Below, one piece after another: positions 37,868 to 52,249 of a stretch of DNA of 64,000 nucleotides. This DNA is from Eutreptiella sp. 'Long Island Sound 2002' (lineage: Eukaryota > Protista > Euglenida). The stretch spans positions 195,796,001 to 195,860,000 of the forward strand of contig OZ038378.1 of NCBI GenBank assembly GCA_964036045.1. The letters run 5' to 3'. The notes beneath the pieces are model-generated. The model was given only the letters and a program-made list of their open reading frames with translations, did no database searches and had not been told where the DNA came from. The first letter of the stretch is position 1. The number at the start of each line of letters is the position of its first letter. The translations under genes and the position numbers were made by a program.

Positions 37868-40800
37868 TCCTCCACAGAATGCGATGAAGCATTGCCCCGT
37901 GACCGCCACACGACCACTGCAGCAACCCCAACAACGTGGATGCCAGACCCGCCCCCTCTTTTCCCGCGCCCGGACAGGCACAGGGCGTCTTGGAACAGGC
38001 AACGACTGTACCCACCGCACCACAGCCTGCCACCCCCATTGCAACGACCCGCTGGTGACCACTGCCATTTGCCCACAAAACGTCGTCAGGGAATCGACAC
38101 CCACTGCGCTTCACCGGACGGGCACGCATCGCACCACGACGCCCCCCGGCGCGTCCTCAGCTCAGCAGCGCTCGGCGTCCAGTAGATGGGGGAAGACTGG
38201 GCCACGAATGCCGGACGCTGGAGGCAAGTGCTGTACAGAACGGGAACGCCGTCGCAGCAGCAGCAGCAGCATGAGGGGTCAGAATACAGGAGAGCGTTGG
38301 TCGATACGGGGGACACTGGGCTCTGGACAGTCACAAAAAACAAGGTGCTCAGAGCCACCTCACATTTGTTGGGGAGCGGACCGCACATGGCAGTGCAGAG
38401 GACACACAGATGCCGCGCCGTTGCAGGTAACATGAGCAGAATGGGGGTCGGAAGGCGCACGTCTGCGGGCGAATGGAGGCCACAGGCAATTCGGGTAGAG
38501 ACCCAGGGTCTGAAGAGGCTGTGGGACGGCGGGAAGGGGCGGCGGCGAGTGCGTGTTGCATGCTGCCCGCAGGGCACACGCCGCGGGCAGAGCAGGCCCA
38601 GAGGGCACGCGGGGTGCTGCGCGGAACACTTTCCCTCTGTCTCCTGACCAGAGCCCCATGACTGAACCGGCAACTGCAGTTCATGACTGGCCGCTTGCCG
38701 TTGGCCATGTGCCAGAGGCTGTTGGCTGACCGCCAGGTCTTGCCGCATTCCTGTGGCCCCGTGTAAATCAACGAGAGTTTTTCACGAAGGAGAGCTCTGC
38801 TTCGCTCTTCTCCTGTTTTCAAAACTGGGACGGCGGCGCCCCGGGGGAGGGGGGGGGGGGTTGGGCGCCCCTTTCTGAGTAGCTGTTTTTTTTTTTCGAC
38901 CTTCTTGCGAAAGGAGCCTGGGGCCGCTTTCGGCTCTTGACAAGCTTTTCTTTCGCTCTTGAGAACTGCATGTGCTGCATGTTGTGCTGACATCCCGCCA
39001 ACCAACACCCACAGCGCACACGTCACCATACGGGGGGGGAGCGGGGGGCTGAAGTGCTTCCATTCGTAATTAGCCCAAAGTTGTCGAACACACCATCTGC
39101 GGCGTGGTTCCAGTGGCATTGTTTGTTCTCAGGAGAGGTCTTGGGAATGGGTCATGTTGCAGCCCCCCACCTCCAGCCACCACCTGGCGCCCCACACTCT
39201 GCAGTGCACCGCCAAGCGTTGGCTGGCGACCATCTGTGGGCACGCCTCCACAAAACGCAACCAAACCGCGCGAAACCGAGATTGCCCAAAGGCAAACTCC
39301 TCCGCCTTTGATGGCTTACCCCCACCCCCAGCCCCACCACGGGATTTGCAGGCTTTGGATGTTCTTTGGATCTTTTGGGCTTTGTCGGTGCTTTATGAGA
39401 CTGAGGGGGAAGACAGGGTATGAACTCCCCCTGGGAACCGCCCCGGGGGGTATTTCTCGGTACAATGTTGTTATCGTACAATGCTTTTACACGCGTACCC
39501 ACCCACCCCGCCCGCCGCCGATGGAATTATTTTTCATATCCATTACATGCTCACATGCCCCCCTCAGCATTAATTATGGGGGCAGGTCCTTCCAGATTCA
39601 GGGAGTACCCATTGGGGCCAGCGCAAATGAACATTCTTCCTGAGCTGCAACTGCAACTTGATCCGTCATTATTGCTTTGAGTCTCTCCATAGTATCATTT
39701 TGACCCAAACCTTGCTTGTGCTTTTGTCATGAATTGAGACAGATATTATACACTGGAGTTGCAATACACATTCGAGACATGTTGGATTGCTTTTTTGGTT
39801 GTCGTGGTTCGGTTGCATTAAGGGAATGAGAGGTAGGGAAAGGGTGGGAAGAGGTGAGGGACCCCAGCCCCCTTTTATCCCAAGGAATTCCCCAAAGGAA
39901 TAGGGTGCAAGACCCCTTTTTCCTGAGAAACAAACCCCCCTTTTCCTAGGAATATGGGGTCGGAAAACCCAGGGAATCCAGAACTACCAAAATTGAGTTT
40001 AGGTGCTTATGGGTCCAATTTCAGCAAGACAAATGGTGCAATGGGTGCTGATTATGCACGAACGACGCACAACAGCATTTCAAGGCTACATTGCCAATTG
40101 CACACATCCTATTTGCCTTCCCTACATTTGGGGGAGTCATCCCGCAATGGTTGTCCTAGGTCACCACATAAGGAAGGCCATCCTTAGCTTAGCAGTAGGA
40201 GATATTTGCGGGCTCAGCAGCGGAGCTTTCTACTTATAACGTTGTTTGCTGCAAATCCATTGAACGTCGCATTTTGAGCAAAGTTTGAATGGGAACCTCA
40301 CAATTGAACGAAATTTGAATGTGATCATGGCCTAAGACCCAACATATTTTCACCCCCTCCGTGTCCGCCCCCCCCATTTGTTCTTCCCAGGGGGATGGGG
40401 GGGTCATTTGGTCAACCCCAAGATTTTGTTGTGGGTCACTGTGTCGTCTCAACGGTCCGTGTGTTGTGAGGCACAGCCACTTGCATCCCCTGAACTTTGG
40501 CAGGACACTTTGAATCACCTTCTCTAAAATGGCACCTGATAGCACGACCATTTACCTCTGGGACAAATGTGATGTTCATCCGCTCTGAAGGGGCCCCTGC
40601 TCTGGCAGAGGTCGTCGGACATTTAGGGCATGGTAATGCATATCGCTGCATCATTTATGACCCTCAAGGCAAGACAGTGCTGCACGACTGTGCATCTGTC
40701 CATTGCCTCTCTCTGCCACGTGTTTGCTCTCCACCCCGCCTTACCCACTCAGAGGCTTCATCCTCTACTCAAGCGGAGCAGCGGGCAGCTGTCAACCGCC

Positions 40801-41879: not shown

Positions 41880-44660
41880 GATCCGACAAAATGCAGCACA
41901 GTGCAGCGCAACGCAAATTAGAACAACATAAGGCAGCACGACACCCAAGCACACCGAGCTGACAGAGGCACACAAATGAGATCAGCGCACAAATCTCGTA
42001 GGTAGGCTCCGGGTGCTTGGATTGGGCCCTACCAATGGGTGGGCAGCCCTATCCAAGCACTTTGGAGGTTCCCCGGACTCGGCCCCGACGGAAAGATTGG
42101 CCCTGCCCGGATAGCCGCGGCTACCATGCCTCATGGAGGCAGCACAGCGCACACCCTAGCGCAGCACGCCAGAGCCGACAGAGGCACACAGCGAAACTTG
42201 TTAGCACACGACAGCACGCAACACACAATATAGTAGAACAAAGCAAAGCGGTGTACCACAACAATGGCGGCGGACGGCCACACCACCCGCCGCAAGCACG
42301 AACACCAGCCCAACACCCAACGCCCAGGGTGGGGCCAGACCTACCACACGGGCACTTCACCCACGCACAGCCACCGCCGCCCACAAATAAGGCACGTGCG
42401 CAAGCCTCAAAGGTAGGCCCTAGGGGCTCGAACTCGGCCCCGCCAATGGGTGGGCGGCCCTATCCAAGCACTTCGGAAGTTACCCGACTCGGCCCCGACG
42501 GGGGGAGCGGCCCTGCCTGGGTAGCCGCAACCGCCACATCTCATGGAGGCAGCGTAGCGCACAATGTGGAGGCAACATAGCACACAACGCAGCGCAGCAG
42601 GTCAGAGCCAGCACAGGCACACAATGAAACTCGCTAGCACACGATAGCACACAACACACAGTACAACAGGGCAAAGCAAAGTAGTGTACCACAACAACAG
42701 TGGCGGACAGCCACACCACCCGCCGTGAGCACCAACACCAGCCCAACACCCAATACCCAGCGTAGGGGCCAGACCCACCACACAGGCACTTCACCCACAC
42801 ACAACCACCACCGCCCACAAACAAGGCACGCACGTGGAGCATCACCAAGAGCCCAAGACCCCACACCCCAACGCCAACACGGCGCCCACCACACACGCAA
42901 CAACCAAGGCCACACTAACACACAACATAGAAGGGATGCTTCCCTGATGCACTCCCGGAGCCATCACCATCCCGACCACACCGGGAGGAGAGGGCAACCC
43001 AAACCTAAGTAAGGGGGTCGCCCCCTGTGGGGGGCTGCCGGCCGGCTACGCGGTTGTCCATTGGGCAGCAACCTAAAACATGTACTGCCCGCGAGTAGCT
43101 AAGTTCTGTCACCGGAGCCTAGTGCAGGGGCCTTGGGCACGCTTATGAGACACAGCGTCCAAACCAGTGGTGGTCACTGCACACGACCAACCAGGGGGTG
43201 GACTCACACGAGTCCCTAGCTCCGAGGCGTGGACAGCCCCGAGTGAAGTCCTCAAACGGGGAGCCCCTCAGCAGCCCAAAAAGCAAGAGAGCAACAACGC
43301 ATCACATTCACCCCACAACAACCCCAACAAACACTAGTGACAGGTCAGTTTGTAGATTTGGAGACATGTGCAAAAGTGCCCGGTGCCCCTAGTACCACCC
43401 AACCGCCAGTGGGACAACCCGACAGCCACAATGGGATGCAAGGAGCGACATGCTGCCCCCCGGCGCCGCACACCAGCAGCGGTGAGCGTGCCAGCAAAAG
43501 AAAAAATAGCCCGAAATTGGGAGGAACACAAGCAGCAAAGCAACTAGGCACAGGGTCGCCCCACACACAACAGTGAGACGAGCCCCAACATGACACACAA
43601 CAATACACAAGGGAACCATGAGGTGCGAGCACTGCAGCAACCACCAAATGCGGCACACGCCGAGCGAGCCATCAGCAAACACCCCCCCCCCCCCCCTCCC
43701 TCTACAAGGTGGCCATGTACTCCACAAGGGCGGGGGCTGCACCCCGCGCGCTAGGAGGTGCCCGCCACGGGGATGGCAACAGGCCCATGACCAGCCAACG
43801 GCGCACGGGACAGTCCACGTCGTACGGAGATGTGAAATCCTTGTACGTGGGGGCAGGCGGGTGGGACAGGAGGGGGTGCACAACAGGGGCACCCAGGAGC
43901 GTCAACAGACAGGGGGAGGAGCAACACAAACGCACAGAACGCGGGAGCCACACCAGGAGGGACAAGGGCGAGCACAACAGACAAGGAGGAGGGGCACAGC
44001 GAGCCTAGAGAGGCAACCAGAACAGCGGGAACAGGGAACCAGAATGGACGGGATGGGTGAGCGTGCGCATGGGAGGCAGCGACAACAAAGGGGATGGCCT
44101 GGCCAGCCAGCCCCGCCGCTACCGGGTGCCAGGACAACCCCTGCTCAACCGGCATCAGGTGGGGGGTGTCTCCCGCAGCCTAGATGGGCTGTTTGCGCAA
44201 CAGGAGCAGGAACCCATTAGGGGCAGACCAGCCGTGAGGGACGTGAGTGGGAAAAGGGCATATGGTGGACGGCCGGCACAGCGCGTGGAGGAACAGGGCA
44301 CCTGGGCCTCACGCACACAGAAACACAGCGAGGCAAGCTATGAACGGCCTGTGGACACAGGCGCATGGACAGCAAAAACAGTAAAACGACCCCAGCAACA
44401 ACCAGCACATCCTCAATACGCCAACTATAGGGCGCCGCTGACGCGCAAACGGCACACCATGCCACATTCAGCACAGCCCCAGCACACCATCTACTGGGCT
44501 CCGCGAACGCGGAAACGACACCAGCAAGAGCACCGGCCGCAGCGGCCGGCAGAAAGCAGCAACCTGACGCAACATGCAAAGGGAAGAACGGGTGACTGTC
44601 AAGGGCCCCGTAAAGGAACAACAACCAGACGGAATGTCACACGGGGGGGGGGGGGGGCGG
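41880..44660 (+). repeat. A/C-rich composite repeat block containing a tandem duplication of about 410-430 bp (42001-42410 and 42411-42850)
   Basis: Both units begin GGTAGGC...CCAATGGGTGGGC.GCCCTATCCAAGCAC and are collinear. Strong A+C strand skew. Confidence 0.8.
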
Positions 44661-46799
44661 CATGCCATGCACATGGCATGCAATTTTTTCAACGATTCCT
44701 ACTCACTGTGCCCTGAAATGTGGTACCATTCTCCCCATTTTGTTGTGTGGTGCATAGTTTGCGAGCAAGAGGTTTGGGATCAAGGTTCCAATTTGTGTTG
44801 GTCATTGTGCTTTGTTGTTGAGGTCCACCAAAGGTGCAGTTCTGAACTTTTCCCGGGGAAGGGGGGTGCCTCTTGCTCTACTGGCATGGTGGTAACCTTC
44901 ATCTCCTGGTGATCTGTAATAGGGGGCCAAGATGGAGGCAACGACCCATCCAGCCCATGGGCTATGCTCTTTAATACAATTTCTTTCCTGAACACCTCTT
45001 ACATGTCGAATGGGCATGAGGTGGTATGTACCCTCCTCTCCTCTCAATTTTCCGCCACTCCTCTCAAGTGTATGCAGTTAGCAGTCCACAGACTTTCACG
45101 CGAGGGCTTTCTCAATACAATGGTGTGGAGGAATCACAGTCTTATGCCATCCACAACTTTTCTTTGGGTGCTGTGTGCAACAGCACAGAGCAATAGGCGC
45201 AAACAGAATGCAGCCACACTGGAATGGATCCTGTTAAGCCCTCATAGCATGTGGATGTACTAGTCGATGCATACAACAGTTCTTCGCTCATAGATTTGGT
45301 GATGGTATGTGGTCCACAAGCCATGGACGACTTCAATAGTTTCTCTGGCTTCATGTCCCATGAATGGAGTGGCTACGTCTGAATTGACATATCAGGGCTG
45401 CAAATGGTTTCATCTCCCTCGCCGTATTCAGAGCTAGCCCCATCCCAATAATGGGGCTTGGGGCCAACCCCTTTCAAATAATAGACCGAAAGATTGGCTA
45501 CATCTCCCATGCTGTGTTGGGTTGGGGCATATTCCAAAATATGGCTCGGAATTGACAATGTCTCGCCTGCCACATTGAGACCTACCTAAAACAGAAAAGG
45601 AATTTCCTAGAAATAAAGGCTCCACAGCACCTTTCAAGCACCCAAACTCCAGACCACCACCACCACGAGCACCACAACTATTACAACGCAACAAACCCTG
45701 GAAGTCCTTTTCAACACAATGGTCAACAGCTTTGGATCTATGAGAATCACAAAGCACATTCCACTACTTGGGACGTGTTGCAAACTCCAGGGAATTTGCA
45801 AATACTCGAGGCAAATCCCACCCCCTCCTTCAAGACCCTACCATTTCCAGGGGCAGTACGCCACAATGCAATAAGCAGTGAGACAACCATTCCACTCTAG
45901 CCCAAGATTGTGGGCATGAAATTCAAAAACGGACATGACGCCCCCCCCCCCCCCAGGGCCCCACCATGTCCAAACAACACATAGGTGTTGCACAGGGAGG
46001 GATCCCTTCCCCCCAAGACCCCCAACCCACACCAATGGTGAACAATAAGGTGCAACCAACCTGGGCACTAGTGGTGCTTGGAAAATTTCTTTGGCCTCTG
46101 TGGCCTAGGGCTCAGAAATCCCTCCCCCCCCTCCCCGATTTTTTCCCATTTCCCCCAATTTCTGGTGAGTGGTAAAAGGGGATTCTGACCCCTCCATTTG
46201 TGTGTATTCAAAAATGCCCCCAATGAAACTGAACCCCACCCCCTCTGGACCCCCGTTCCCATGCCGCGGGGCTTGGGGTCTGGAACCGAACAACCCTCCA
46301 TGACATATTGTTTCCTCATTTTTTGCACCATGGATTTCAGTGGCCTAGTTCTTTTCTCCAGTGAGAGAGTTTGCTTCCTGTGCTGTCTGGTAATGGGGAA
46401 TTTTTGTTAGCTTCTGGGCCGAGGCTATAGTTTAGATAGAATGGGGGGGGGGGGGGTTGGATGTAGCTGGTTTGTTTTGTTATTCACCTTTTGACCTTGA
46501 TGCCCACCAACACACACGGTATGCATGCCACAGCCCCACCCTAGATCCGTGATGGGGACCCCTGACAGGCCATGTGGGAGGTTTGGGGGGGCTCGAGCAG
46601 GGGTACGGGATGCTGTCCCAAATGGTGGACAGAGGTAAGGATGGTCTTCAAGGGGGGGAGGTGCTTGAATTATTGCGTGTGTCCCCGTCAGGGCCCAACC
46701 CACAGCCTAAGGCCCCTGAGGATCGAAAACACAGGTCCAAACAGATTCGCCACCTGTCGCAGCAACTGCAGAGCAAGCGCAAGTTATCAGTGCTATTGC

Positions 46800-46824
46800 A
46801 AAACCCCAAAGCCCCCAAAACCCC
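46800..46824 (+). repeat. Telomere-like (A4C4)3 repeat: AAAACCCC AAAGCCCCC AAAACCCC
   Basis: Read directly from the sequence. It differs from perfect (A4C4)3 by one substitution and one extra C, and ends 21 nt before the GST ATG. Confidence 0.75.
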
Positions 46825-46845
46825 GATTCGCTTCAAGCAATTATT

Positions 46846-47634
46846 ATGACGAACGAGTGGCAATCCTTAAAGCGCATGATCTTGGCTGGGTCTGCGCCCA
46901 AACCCGAAGTGAACAAGGCCCACTTCCGCATGTACGGTCACACGCTGTGCCCGTTTGTGAGCCGTGCGCGGTACGCTTTTGCGCTGAAGAAGATCCCCTT
47001 CCAAGATGTGCAAGTCGACCTGAACGAGAAGGCGCAGTGGCACCTGGACTTCAACAACGGGTTCGTGCCTGTGCTGGAGACCCCAGCTGGCGATCTGATC
47101 AAGGAAAGCGGAGTTGTGGCTCAGTTTGCCCACGATTACAGCAGTGAAGGTTTTGATCTGTGGCCCAAGGACCCCACGCAGGCCGCGTTTATGAGGCTGG
47201 AGATGGCAGCGTTCGATGCAACGCTGGGCAACTTCTTCGCGATTTACATGTCGCGTGGGCTTGACGACGAGACGACGGATCGGTTTGGCTCCACTGGCCT
47301 TGTGCAGTGGGAGAATCTTTGTGCCAAGGCCGAGGGCAAGTGGCTGTTTAAGACCGAGGAGCCCAGCATGCTGGACTGCCACGTCGCCGGCTTCATGGAA
47401 TTGCTGTACCTCTACCAGGACGGCGTGTTCAGCAACTGCACTGACCGTCTGGACCTCAAGAACAAGGCACCAAACGTGCTGGCGTACGTTGAGCGTTTTC
47501 GCGCTCATCCGCTGATCCACGAGCACCGCTTCCGCGAGAAAGCTGCCATCGCACACCAAGTGCGCACCCGTGGCTGGAAAGAGGGCGAAAAGTGCCAGCT
47601 CTCCCTGGAGGTCCTCGAGGGGGCCTTCGACTGA
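46846..47634 (+). CDS. Intronless omega-class-like glutathione S-transferase, 262 aa
   Basis: GST N-domain with active-site LCPF (YGHTLCPFVSRAR), cis-Pro motif GFVPVLE and ES motif (LIKESGVV); C-domain capping motif SMLDCH. Uninterrupted ORF with GC3-biased codons, ending in TGA. Confidence 0.93.
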   Translation: MTNEWQSLKRMILAGSAPKPEVNKAHFRMYGHTLCPFVSRARYAFALKKIPFQDVQVDLNEKAQWHLDFNNGFVPVLETPAGDLIKESGVVAQFAHDYSSEGFDLWPKDPTQAAFMRLEMAAFDATLGNFFAIYMSRGLDDETTDRFGSTGLVQWENLCAKAEGKWLFKTEEPSMLDCHVAGFMELLYLYQDGVFSNCTDRLDLKNKAPNVLAYVERFRAHPLIHEHRFREKAAIAHQVRTRGWKEGEKCQLSLEVLEGAFD

Positions 47635-49129
47635 TCCTCATCCGGAGCCATTCTGATGGATGAAAAGCTTAGGAATGTTGTACGTACTGGGCTTCTATTA
47701 TGAAGCCCACATCTACGACAGATCGAGCGAGAATTGAGTATATACCGCCCCCCCCCCCAGATCGCATGGGGCAATGGGGCAGCACGCAAGTTATGGCGGG
47801 AAGCCACGCTTGAGCGGGTGCTTGTTGCGCTGCGAGCAGTGGACCCAAATGCAGCGCCAGGCAGCGATGGATTTACAGGGCCATTGTACAAAAAGCTCTC
47901 CGAGTTTTTCGCACCACCGATGTTGGACATAATACATAATACAGGAAGTTTCCTCTACGGGTCATCTAGGAAGTGTAGGGCGCCTGCCACATTGGATGTG
48001 CGCCTCAGCTTTGATTGGTACAACAACATGCCACTGTCCTGGGGCTTGCCATTCGAATGGACCACTGGCGTGCGGGGGCACTCGCTCTTACGCACCGCAT
48101 TGCGATTTCGCTAAATACGTCTGTCAGTGGTGCAAGAGCAACCATCCCAAGGCACCGCTGCACGTCGTTGCCCTGTGCCCATCCACTGAGAGCCTCAGGC
48201 AGGCGTTTTTCATCTCCTTTGGGGGCAGAACTCTCCCCCAAGGTGAAACACTGGTTCCAAAACAAAGCTGACCAAGGCCAAAAAACACATTTCATCAGAG
48301 GACTGGTGCCAAAAACCCTGAGGTACGCCCTGCTGTCACCAGCAGCATCAGCAGAACAAAAGAAAGCATTTGAGAAAATCATTCCTTCAGGAGAAAGGCA
48401 CTTACACAAGCCATCACAGAGGCAAAAGACTGGATCATCAAACACCCACTGTCCCCACTACCACAGCCATCCACCCGAAATCCATGGCCTGTGGTAGGCG
48501 CATACAGTACATCCATCACCAGACCATCAAAAATCAGCCCGCCAGATTTTCTGAAAAACCTGCCAGACAAAGTACAGCTCACCCCCGCAAACGAAAATCA
48601 AGACCAGAAGCACCCTCACCCAGCAAACGAAGACACAAGCAGCCGAGCCAGAAACACACAAATAACAAGCCCCCTCCACACACCAGACCCAACACCACTA
48701 CACTTTTTCTGACCCACCCCCCCCCAGGACCCCCCTCACAAACACAACAGGGGAAGAGACAGCACAGTCCAGACCCCACCAGGAGCACAGACGGACCCAC
48801 AGTGTGTACACTAACCCAATCTGAGGTGCAGGATGCGTGCTACAGTGAATTTCAGCACTGAGCACCCGCACACAGTACCAGTCCTTGCCAGCACAAAAGT
48901 CGCGTTCCTTTGACAGGTGCAACATGAATCAGGCAGTTGTGTATGTTATTGCATGCAGGCCACGTGCGGTTTAATGTAGTGGCAGCAACCCAAAGCCTGG
49001 GCAACTCGGAAACACTGCAAGGTTTTCCGATTTGCAAAAAGGGCCCAAGGGTGAGCCACAATACAAGTGTACATACGGCAAACGACTCGCATTGCACAGT
49101 GAATGGTGTTCGAATTGATGGGGAATGCA

Positions 49130-49308
49130 ACCCAAAAATTGCAATGAAGCAAAAAAAAGGGTGCCTGCCAGCTGAGTGGTGCCACAGCATGACCAGGTGT
49201 GTGCCTAAGAGCCAAGGCAGCATTTCCGTGAACAATCATAGGACCGTTACTCTGCTCAATTGCAAAAATCAAATGGCTTATAAGCGTGTTGAAACTGGCG
49301 TTGGATAA
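49130..49308 (+). mobile_element. LINE reverse transcriptase N-terminal fragment
   Basis: KKGCLPAEWCHSMTRCVPKSQGSISVNNHRTVTLLNCKNQ matches the non-LTR RT pattern GxxPxxW...IPK...NYRPIxLLN. Confidence 0.75.
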
Positions 49309-49457
49309 CTTGGTTGCGCTTTTTTCCCATCGCCACAGACGAGGTGTGTGAAAGGGCAACAAGGGCAACAGTTTTGCTGGCCCCCAGGGGAAAGGCAAAG
49401 GGCCACACCCCTTGGTACAGGGCTTCACCGCTTGCCCAAGGGGGCCGCCCTCCGGTT

Positions 49458-50128
49458 CAGACCTGTGGTTATAGCCGTGCGGTCTAATGAGGTGCAAGCG
49501 TGCGCAGCCGTGCAGAGGTTATGGTTGCAAGCGTGCGTAGCCGTGCGTCCCCGATGTGCGCAACCGTGCGCAACCTTGTAAGAAAACATTTTTGACCGGA
49601 GAGCCCCTTAGGTGCCGGCCGCGTCCGATGATGGTGTTTATTTGTGTGATGTGCCAGACGTACCGGTACCCAGTATGGAACAAAATTTGTCCGAGGAAAC
49701 CAAAACTGGCAACCAGGAGGGTGACTTCTTATCGTGGCTGGCGAAGTATAAGCCGCAATTGGCAGTTTATGAAGTTCGGTTGCGCCGTGATGGATGGGAT
49801 ACATTACAATCTTTGAGACTTCTTACTCCTGATGACATGGCTGACATGAACATACTCCCTGGACATCGCCGTTTGTTGGTGGACGCGTTGAAGGATTTGT
49901 AATGACTGGTGCTTGACCTGGTGGGGCGCTGACGTACAAATGTTAGCCCGGAACTGACCGGGGGGTCTTGGTAAACAAACAGTACCCTTAAACAGAAATA
50001 CCACCAGCACCAGTAAGGCAACCGTGCGCAACCGTGCGAAGGAATCAGGCGCAAGCGTGCGTAACCGTGCGGCCCCGATGTGCGCAAGCGTGCGTAACCG
50101 TGCGCGCACGGCTATAACCACAGGTCTG
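49458..50128. mobile_element. Non-autonomous hAT-type DNA transposon (671 bp) carrying an ORF
   Basis: Perfect 24-bp TIR CAGACCTGTGGTTATAGCCGTGCG (49458-49481 and 50105-50128). Perfect 8-bp TSD CTCCGGTT (49450-49457 and 50129-50136). Subterminal GCAAGCGTGCG/GCAACCGTGCG motif arrays at both ends. Confidence 0.92.
49675..49902 (+). CDS. 75-aa SAM (sterile alpha motif) domain ORF inside the hAT element
   Basis: FLSWLAKYKPQLAVYEVRLRRDGWDTLQSLRLLTPDDMADMNILPGHRRLLVDALKDL fits the SAM pattern WL...L..Y...(F/L)...G.D.L..L..LT.DD...M.I..GH...L..AL..L. ATG at 49675 follows CAG-T; stop TAA. Confidence 0.8.
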   Translation: MEQNLSEETKTGNQEGDFLSWLAKYKPQLAVYEVRLRRDGWDTLQSLRLLTPDDMADMNILPGHRRLLVDALKDL

Positions 50129-52249
50129 CTCCGGTTGCATTGAGCACTTCGTAAAAAAGTCGTAAACACCACCAATTGTTGCAAAATGGGTGCCCGAATA
50201 GTGGGAAAAATGTACGGGCTGAGAAATAAAAAAATCTGAGCCCATGCATTTTTCCAAAAACTGGGGAAACGTACGGGCTGAATTACAAAACCTCAGCCCG
50301 TACATTTTTCCAATTTTTTCCACCTATCAAAAATGGAGTTTTGCTTGCCCCCGGGGGAATACACAACTTTCACGTGCCGTACCACCGAATCCGTCAGGAG
50401 GTGGGGTGGTTCGGGGGCGGGGGGTCCACCTTATGGGGGGAATAAGTGGCACCAGACCAGAGGAGTCGACCCCAATTGAAATGTGCAGGGATCAATCAAA
50501 TGGAATACTTCCAGAGGGGTCCCATCGGCACCGGGGCAGGGGGGAGGGGGGGGTAGGAGGTGCAGAAAAAAAAAGAAGAGCACAGTCCCGTGGCCCAAGG
50601 AAAGAGTGTCATCCTGTAACTCTGCACAACTTCGACGTGAAAAAGACTGACACTCCCAAACCAACCCAATCACTCGGTGTGCCCAAAACTGCAATCAATA
50701 CTGTCTCTTCTTGTTGCCCGTCCTACTGACCTTGCGCTTCAATGACTAACGGCTATCGGGCCCAGAGCTGGTTGGATGGTCAGGCCAAGTGTGCCCCACG
50801 CACAGCCATGTACAAGCGCGCGCACTAGCGTATAGGTGCATGATCAGAAGACAGGACACGGCGTAAGTGCACGCTCGCTGACGAAAAAGTGTCTGCGCAA
50901 GGCGAATTATTGAGTTTGCGTGATCGCTGACTGAACAGTCTGCAATATCTAATTTGCCTGCCTTTTAGCTATGTTCTGGCAGTGGTGGCGAATCCCTGCA
51001 GCGCATTTGATTAACAACGACTGCGCTGAATGCTTAGCCGACGAGATTCGATGAACATGCTGAGGAGACACTATATTTCAATGGGGAGCGGCGTTTGCAA
51101 ATGTGCACGTGTTGTTCTTATCTGCACGTAGCGCGTATTTTGGTGTGGGACAGAACGATCAGTTTCCTGAAAAAGCAGCCGGATGGAAACAGAAACAAAC
51201 GACACAGAAACAATGCTGGGCAGCCCAAGGGATGATCCAAGAATACTACTTGTTTGTGCTGAACTGTGTGGACATTGGCTGAAACTGCCTTTGCAGGGGC
51301 ATCCAGTATCATGTTACCGACCAAGATTGACCCAATCATAGCATGGCAGCTGGTCCTCTCCTCTGTTGCTGTTCCACCCCTGACCCTCCCCACTACAGAT
51401 GCCAAGGCTGGTGGCTACACCAGGGCCCACATGCATACACAAGGCTTGGGCAGCCGCAGTGCCATGTCTGTGACCACACCACCCGTCCTACCACCCCTCC
51501 TCCATGCCAATGGCCCGGGCCATGTTTCTTCATTTCTTTATGGAAAGGGCCTTGGCAGAGGGCGCCATGTCTCTTACACGGGGGGGCAGGCCGGGGTCAC
51601 AAAGGCTGAGTGCGTATGCCGATGGGTCCTTCCGGATGTGCATACTTGTCCGCCTTTTGACTTTTGAGGAGGGAGTCCCCCTCTTTCTCCCCACCTTTTC
51701 TGTGCCTGACTTCATGGGCAATAGTGGCATACTCACTCTCTGTTGTTGCTTTGGGTTTGTGCTTTCGTGCAAAGGTTGGCTTAGGCTCAGGCAACTTGAG
51801 GATGGTGCTGTGCGCCACATGGGCTCTTATCTATGTTCATTTTTCAGTACCACATGGGCAACGGACAGTCGTGTCTGAGGTGTAGTAGGCGCTGGTACCG
51901 TATTGATGTGTGTGCCCGAGACTTACCCGAGACACCGGTGGGTGGGGGGGAGGGGCATATTTGTTGTTCCACAACGGGACCCGGAAAAGGCACGCTATGG
52001 CACAGGGTGTCAAACGGTCCATCGAGGAGCATTTTGGCTCTGAAGCAACCACGTCTCAAATGTTTGAGCGATCGTAATTGTGTTGGTTTTGTGTCCGGGT
52101 CATTTTATGTGGAGAGAGGCGTGTTCCATGTCAGCGGGCAACAAGTTAGATGTGAGACCCGTTTTAGTCCCCAGTGGTATGTGTCTACACGGAACCATCT
52201 CCTCTTCCCATGATCCGCGCCTTCCTGTTTGCACATTTCAAAGCTCAGC

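Follow-up and report, generated by a model that had tools for sequence, protein, structure and literature searches.

Spirotrich ciliates carry macronuclear nanochromosomes, gene-sized linear DNAs capped by C4A4/G4T4 repeats, in which TAA and TAG are read as sense and TGA as stop. Gene transfers between eukaryotes are known, but these are almost always inferred from phylogeny alone, when a foreign, intact and expressed gene is found nested in a donor clade, and the molecule that carried the gene is unknown. Intronless genes expressed by trans-splicing are also known as spliced-leader-bearing retrogenes of euglenids and dinoflagellates. Here we describe a locus in a Euglena-type alga in which an expressed, intronless gene for a detoxification-type enzyme, an omega-class glutathione transferase (GST), lies next to what is probably the worn chromosome-end repeat of a ciliate nanochromosome. 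The locus shares with nanochromosomes a 5′ C4A4-type repeat, a very short AT-rich leader, a single intronless ORF and a TGA stop, and the homologues of this gene are such molecules. It differs in that it is no longer a free linear molecule, has a degenerate repeat, lacks a 3′ trailer and a G4T4 end, is embedded in a large host chromosome and is expressed by the host's trans-splicing. In comparison with the spliced-leader-bearing retrogenes, it has no genomic leader relic and no poly(A), and the upstream mark is a foreign telomere instead. In comparison with other transfers between eukaryotes, a physical scar of the donor molecule survives, so that the vehicle and the DNA-level route can be named. 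Full-text searches found no report of a nanochromosome, or of any telomere-scarred ciliate gene, captured by another eukaryote.

Results

Anatomy of the locus

We analysed a 64 kb stretch of DNA (hereafter the window) in which the following features were recognized.

46553–46799 (+): left flank, an 82-codon open-frame remnant of the interrupted host sequence, proposed to be the LINE ORF2 linker
46800–46824 (+): worn spirotrich-type telomere repeat, A4C4-A3GC5-A4C4, marking the left end of the captured DNA
46825–46845 (+): 21-nt AT-rich subtelomeric leader, now holding the trans-splice acceptor
46836–46837 (+): AG acceptor for spliced-leader trans-splicing; the mature 5′ UTR is the leader plus CAATTATT
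46846–47634 (+): intact, intronless omega-class GST ORF (262 aa) with the catalytic Cys35 in an LCPF motif
47632–47634 (+): TGA stop at or next to the right junction
47635–48111 (+): right flank, a remnant with a possible LINE ORF2 pre-RT motif (PGSDGFTGPLYKK at 47803–47934), serving as part of the 3′ UTR
47635–49067 (+): about 1.4 kb of unspliced 3′ UTR made of host repeat debris

The repeat, AAAACCCCAAAGCCCCCAAAACCCC, matches (A4C4)3 at 21 of 24 positions without gaps, or differs from it by one substitution and one extra C. The (A4C4)3 pattern with up to three mismatches occurs once in the window on both strands and in 0 of 100 dinucleotide-preserving shuffles. The leader, GATTCGCTTCAAGCAATTATT, has a GC content of 0.33 and is followed by an ATG-to-TGA ORF of 262 codons, in which the Gln codons are CAA (four) and CAG (six) and there is no in-frame TAA or TAG. 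Apart from the complement of the 5′ relic, no G4T4 repeat was present anywhere in the window. The ORF ends ...LEGAFD*, whereas relatives end ...LEGAFEEQ* or ...LEGVFEDL*, 2–4 codons later. The captured DNA was therefore cut within the last few codons, although the exact right boundary is inferred. A search of the window against Rfam gave no hit at gathering thresholds, and nine large ORFs elsewhere in the window had no Pfam family.

The preliminary description had placed the insertion within a dead, L1/Tx1-like LINE, and this setting is only weakly supported. Joining 46799 to 47633 gives one frame (46553–46799 plus 47633–48111) of about 242 codons with a single stop. The stretch at 47803–47934 (..APGSDGFTGPLYKKLSEFFAPPMLDII), which contains a PGxDGFT..Y motif, gave residues 452–496 of human L1 ORF2p as its top five PDB sequence matches, but at non-significant E-values of 0.6–1.4. 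Pfam found no RT or endonuclease in ten flank pieces, a homologue search was blank, a protein-atlas search gave only unnamed clusters and PDB searches of the left and middle pieces found nothing relevant. Searches with blastn and tblastn detected no second copy of either flank in the window. Thus, insertion into a dead LINE is plausible but not demonstrated.

The encoded protein is an intact, constrained omega-class GST

The Pfam families GST_N_2, GST_N_3 and GST_N matched above their cut-offs, and the best sequence matches among solved structures were human GSTO1/2, Leishmania TDR1 and pyrimidodiazepine synthase, although identity to solved members is only about 20–22%. An AlphaFold model built on an alignment of the family was confident (mean pLDDT 93.2, pTM 0.90) and predicts a full two-domain GST fold. 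The top 23 PDB fold matches of this model were all omega-class GSTs, of which the first 13 were human or rat GSTO1, with TM scores of 0.65–0.73 by query length over about 219–263 columns (about 240 columns for the best match, human GSTO1). Leishmania TDR1 was ranked 24th. The residues C35-P36-F37 are invariant in the alignment, and the window protein keeps 43 of 45 positions that are at least 90% conserved among relatives, the same proportion as the relatives themselves. More distant family members (proteins P0041, P0042 and P0046; 510–532 aa) are tandem double GSTs with two matched stretches each, as in Leishmania TDR1.

The nearest relatives lie on nanochromosome-like contigs

The closest proteins in a collection of 5.8 billion sequences were 44–58% identical to the window protein. 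Of 42 family members, the window protein alone lies on a large (1.35 Mb) contig, while the longest contigs of the others are at most 2.8 kb and mostly 0.7–1.2 kb. The contig of the best hit (L001, 925 bp) and four contigs of the next (L002–L005, 989–1033 bp) all begin CCCCAAAACCCCAAAACCCC and end GGGGTTTTGGGGTTTTGGGG. A scan of JGI metagenomes returned 31 further loci, of which 16 have such repeats at one or both contig ends and 29 have one to thirteen in-frame TAA/TAG codons inside the matched region, typically closing with TGA. These characteristics are the signature of spirotrich macronuclear chromosomes. No homologue carries a species name, however, and the label 'spirotrich' rests on C4A4 ends, contig size and codon usage. 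Two telomere-to-telomere contigs, L008 (2068 bp) and L037 (1676 bp), in which the GST fills only part of the molecule (starting at 1165 in L008, and followed by an 841-nt trailer in L037), are probably two-gene nanochromosomes.

In the nanochromosome homologues the first in-frame ATG lies 21–102 nt from the 5′ telomere, and the leaders are AT-rich (GC 0.21–0.25). The window therefore reproduces the donor architecture in the right orientation. Euglenophyte telomeres are TTAGGG, and chlorophyte telomerase makes the Arabidopsis-type repeat, TTTAGGG (PMC3622300). The repeat is therefore not the host's own, nor that of a typical green alga. No donor closer than 58% amino-acid or about 75% nucleotide identity was found.

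Phylogeny

In a tree of 53 sequences, the window GST fell in a clade of 26 with support of 100/99, which holds 12 telomere-bearing sequences and five more with in-frame TAA/TAG, and further telomere-bearing clades branch outside it. After removal of unlabelled ingroup sequences and the Pyramimonas sequences, it fell in a 97/93 clade with six ciliate sequences. Forcing the ingroup ciliate sequences to be one clade without it cost 34.7 log-likelihood units and was rejected (AU P=0.011). A caveat is a tight clade of three standard-code GSTs in the same polytomy, from Pyramimonas obovata (MMETSP1169), Pyramimonas sp. CCMP1952 and one JGI metatranscriptome contig. These sequences have TAG/TAA stops, and no telomeres or C4A4 relics were found on the transcripts. 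A tree joining them to the window protein was 11.6 log-likelihood units worse than the best tree but was not rejected (AU P=0.24). This clade is nested inside the ciliate nanochromosome family and may represent a second ciliate-to-alga transfer or a link to the euglenid plastid donor lineage. The family appears largely confined to ciliate nanochromosomes, plus Pyramimonas and this alga.

Integration and expression

We examined Logan contigs of two DNA samples (X1 and X3) across 44600–50400. A 4363-nt contig of X1 covers 44643–49005 and a 1688-nt contig of X3, an independent sample, covers 45975–47662. Both cross the junctions with no differences, at a depth (about 40 and 28–35, respectively) equal to that of the single-copy flanks in each run, although the left junction is supported only by DNA runs of one study. 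Among contigs of 90% or more likeness, no joint skipped 46800–47633, and no empty-site copy was recovered. Further downstream, DNA contigs in both X1 and X3 join 49444 to 50128, skipping 683 bp, so copies or alleles without this stretch exist. Extremely abundant repeats lie at 44600–44793 and 49256–49449, where summed contig word depth is about 2–4×10^5 and 4–5×10^4, against a single-copy level near 40. The first of these abuts a poly-G tract at 44643–44659, where many contigs break.

RNA contigs from an estuary metatranscriptome (X4) and from a 2015 study of another organism label (X6) both start exactly at 46837. The X4 contig carries ATTTTTTTTC in front, which together with G46837 matches 11 of the 12 conserved 3′ letters of the Euglena gracilis spliced leader, TATTTTTTTTCG (PMC4778363). 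These contigs cross the right junction, and overlapping contigs continue unspliced to 49009–49067, whereas the single-copy upstream stretch at 44794–46733 has zero RNA depth. Further RNA runs hold the sequence. The gene is thus chromosomal, single-copy, transcribed and trans-spliced at the AG inside the foreign leader, with host sequence as its 3′ UTR. The preliminary description had predicted that the protein would nest among spirotrich sequences, that the junctions would be real and that the host leader would be added at the AAG at 46835–46837, and all three predictions were borne out.

Discussion

Our analysis supports, with good though not complete confidence, the capture of the 5′ part of a single-gene macronuclear nanochromosome of a spirotrich ciliate, comprising telomere, short leader and nearly the whole GST ORF, which was integrated as DNA into the nuclear genome of a Euglena gracilis-type alga. 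We infer that it probably entered by end joining at a break inside an old repeat, likely a LINE remnant. By inference, the 25-nt relic corresponds to the 20-bp duplex repeat plus about four bases of a filled-in overhang, joined to a broken host site, while the 3′ trailer and G4T4 end were lost and the ORF now closes at a TGA at the junction. The gene works in the host because the donor copy had no in-frame TAA/TAG, and such copies exist in this family (L001, L002–L005 and L024, another of its loci, have none). An AG in the ciliate leader serves as acceptor for the host's spliced leader, so no imported promoter or 5′ UTR is needed. The product is a cytosolic omega-class (Cys-type) GST, whose enzyme activity is inferred. 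The GC3 of the window GST is 0.76, but ciliate homologues span 0.30–0.79 and amelioration cannot be inferred. No euglenid orthologue of 70–95% identity appeared in the searches, which weakly suggests a lineage-specific event.

An alternative, though unlikely, source of the gene is endosymbiotic transfer from the Pyramimonas-like green-algal plastid ancestor of Euglena, with the C4A4-like motif being coincidental. The Pyramimonas-type homologues are 49% identical to the window protein and their union with it is not excluded by the tree test. However, identity to the ciliate L001 is higher (58%), the best tree does not join them and the Pyramimonas clade is itself nested among telomere-bearing sequences. 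Nor does this reading explain a telomere-type repeat at the position and orientation seen in the nanochromosomes, the lack of introns, or an N-terminus collinear with the ciliate proteins and without any presequence. By inference, a neutral 25-mer would not survive since plastid acquisition. Similarly doubtful is a ciliate gene that arrived by another route, such as reverse transcription of an RNA by the LINE machinery or passage through an intermediate host, such that the motif is not a telomere remnant of the captured molecule. The LINE-like setting is compatible with this route and phylogeny alone says nothing about the vehicle, but there is no poly(A), no 3′ UTR, no spliced-leader relic and no target-site duplication. 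Ordinary ciliate mRNAs do not include the telomere, and the position of the motif matches the DNA molecule.

A processed retrocopy of a native, intron-bearing Euglena GST would account for the lack of introns but is improbable, as there is no poly(A), no host paralogue appears among the 42 family members and all relatives lie on contigs of at most 2.8 kb, mostly of nanochromosome size. Leader-like relics seem enriched in this region, with 12 matches in the window to the 3′ end of the spliced leader (up to two mismatches) against 2.0 expected and a maximum of six in shuffles. None is near the GST, the nearest leader-like 12-mers being at 38887 (TTTTTTTTTTCG) and 52765. Ciliate nanochromosomes are common culture and metagenome contaminants, but contamination or a chimeric assembly is very unlikely and is contradicted by the DNA contigs that cross both junctions at the depth of the flanks and by transcripts in two independent studies that continue 1.4 kb into host DNA, with the euglenid leader tail seen in X4.

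More speculatively, ciliate nanochromosomes may act as a recurrent natural vehicle for gene transfer between eukaryotes. They are tiny, hugely amplified, telomere-protected linear DNAs, each carrying one intron-poor gene, and recipients with spliced-leader trans-splicing, such as euglenids, can express such a captured gene at once. This possibility remains tentative. If correct, this GST, and perhaps the Pyramimonas clade nested in the same ciliate family, would be the first recognized cases, and more telomere-scarred genes would await discovery in this genome.

Here the chromosome-end repeat of the donor survives next to the gene, and this probably identifies both the donor type, a spirotrich ciliate, and the vehicle, a gene-sized macronuclear chromosome. 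The case also shows how the recipient made the gene work, through spliced-leader addition at an AG inside the foreign leader and with host debris as the 3′ UTR. This turns a long-standing question, how foreign eukaryotic DNA enters and becomes expressed, into something directly testable.
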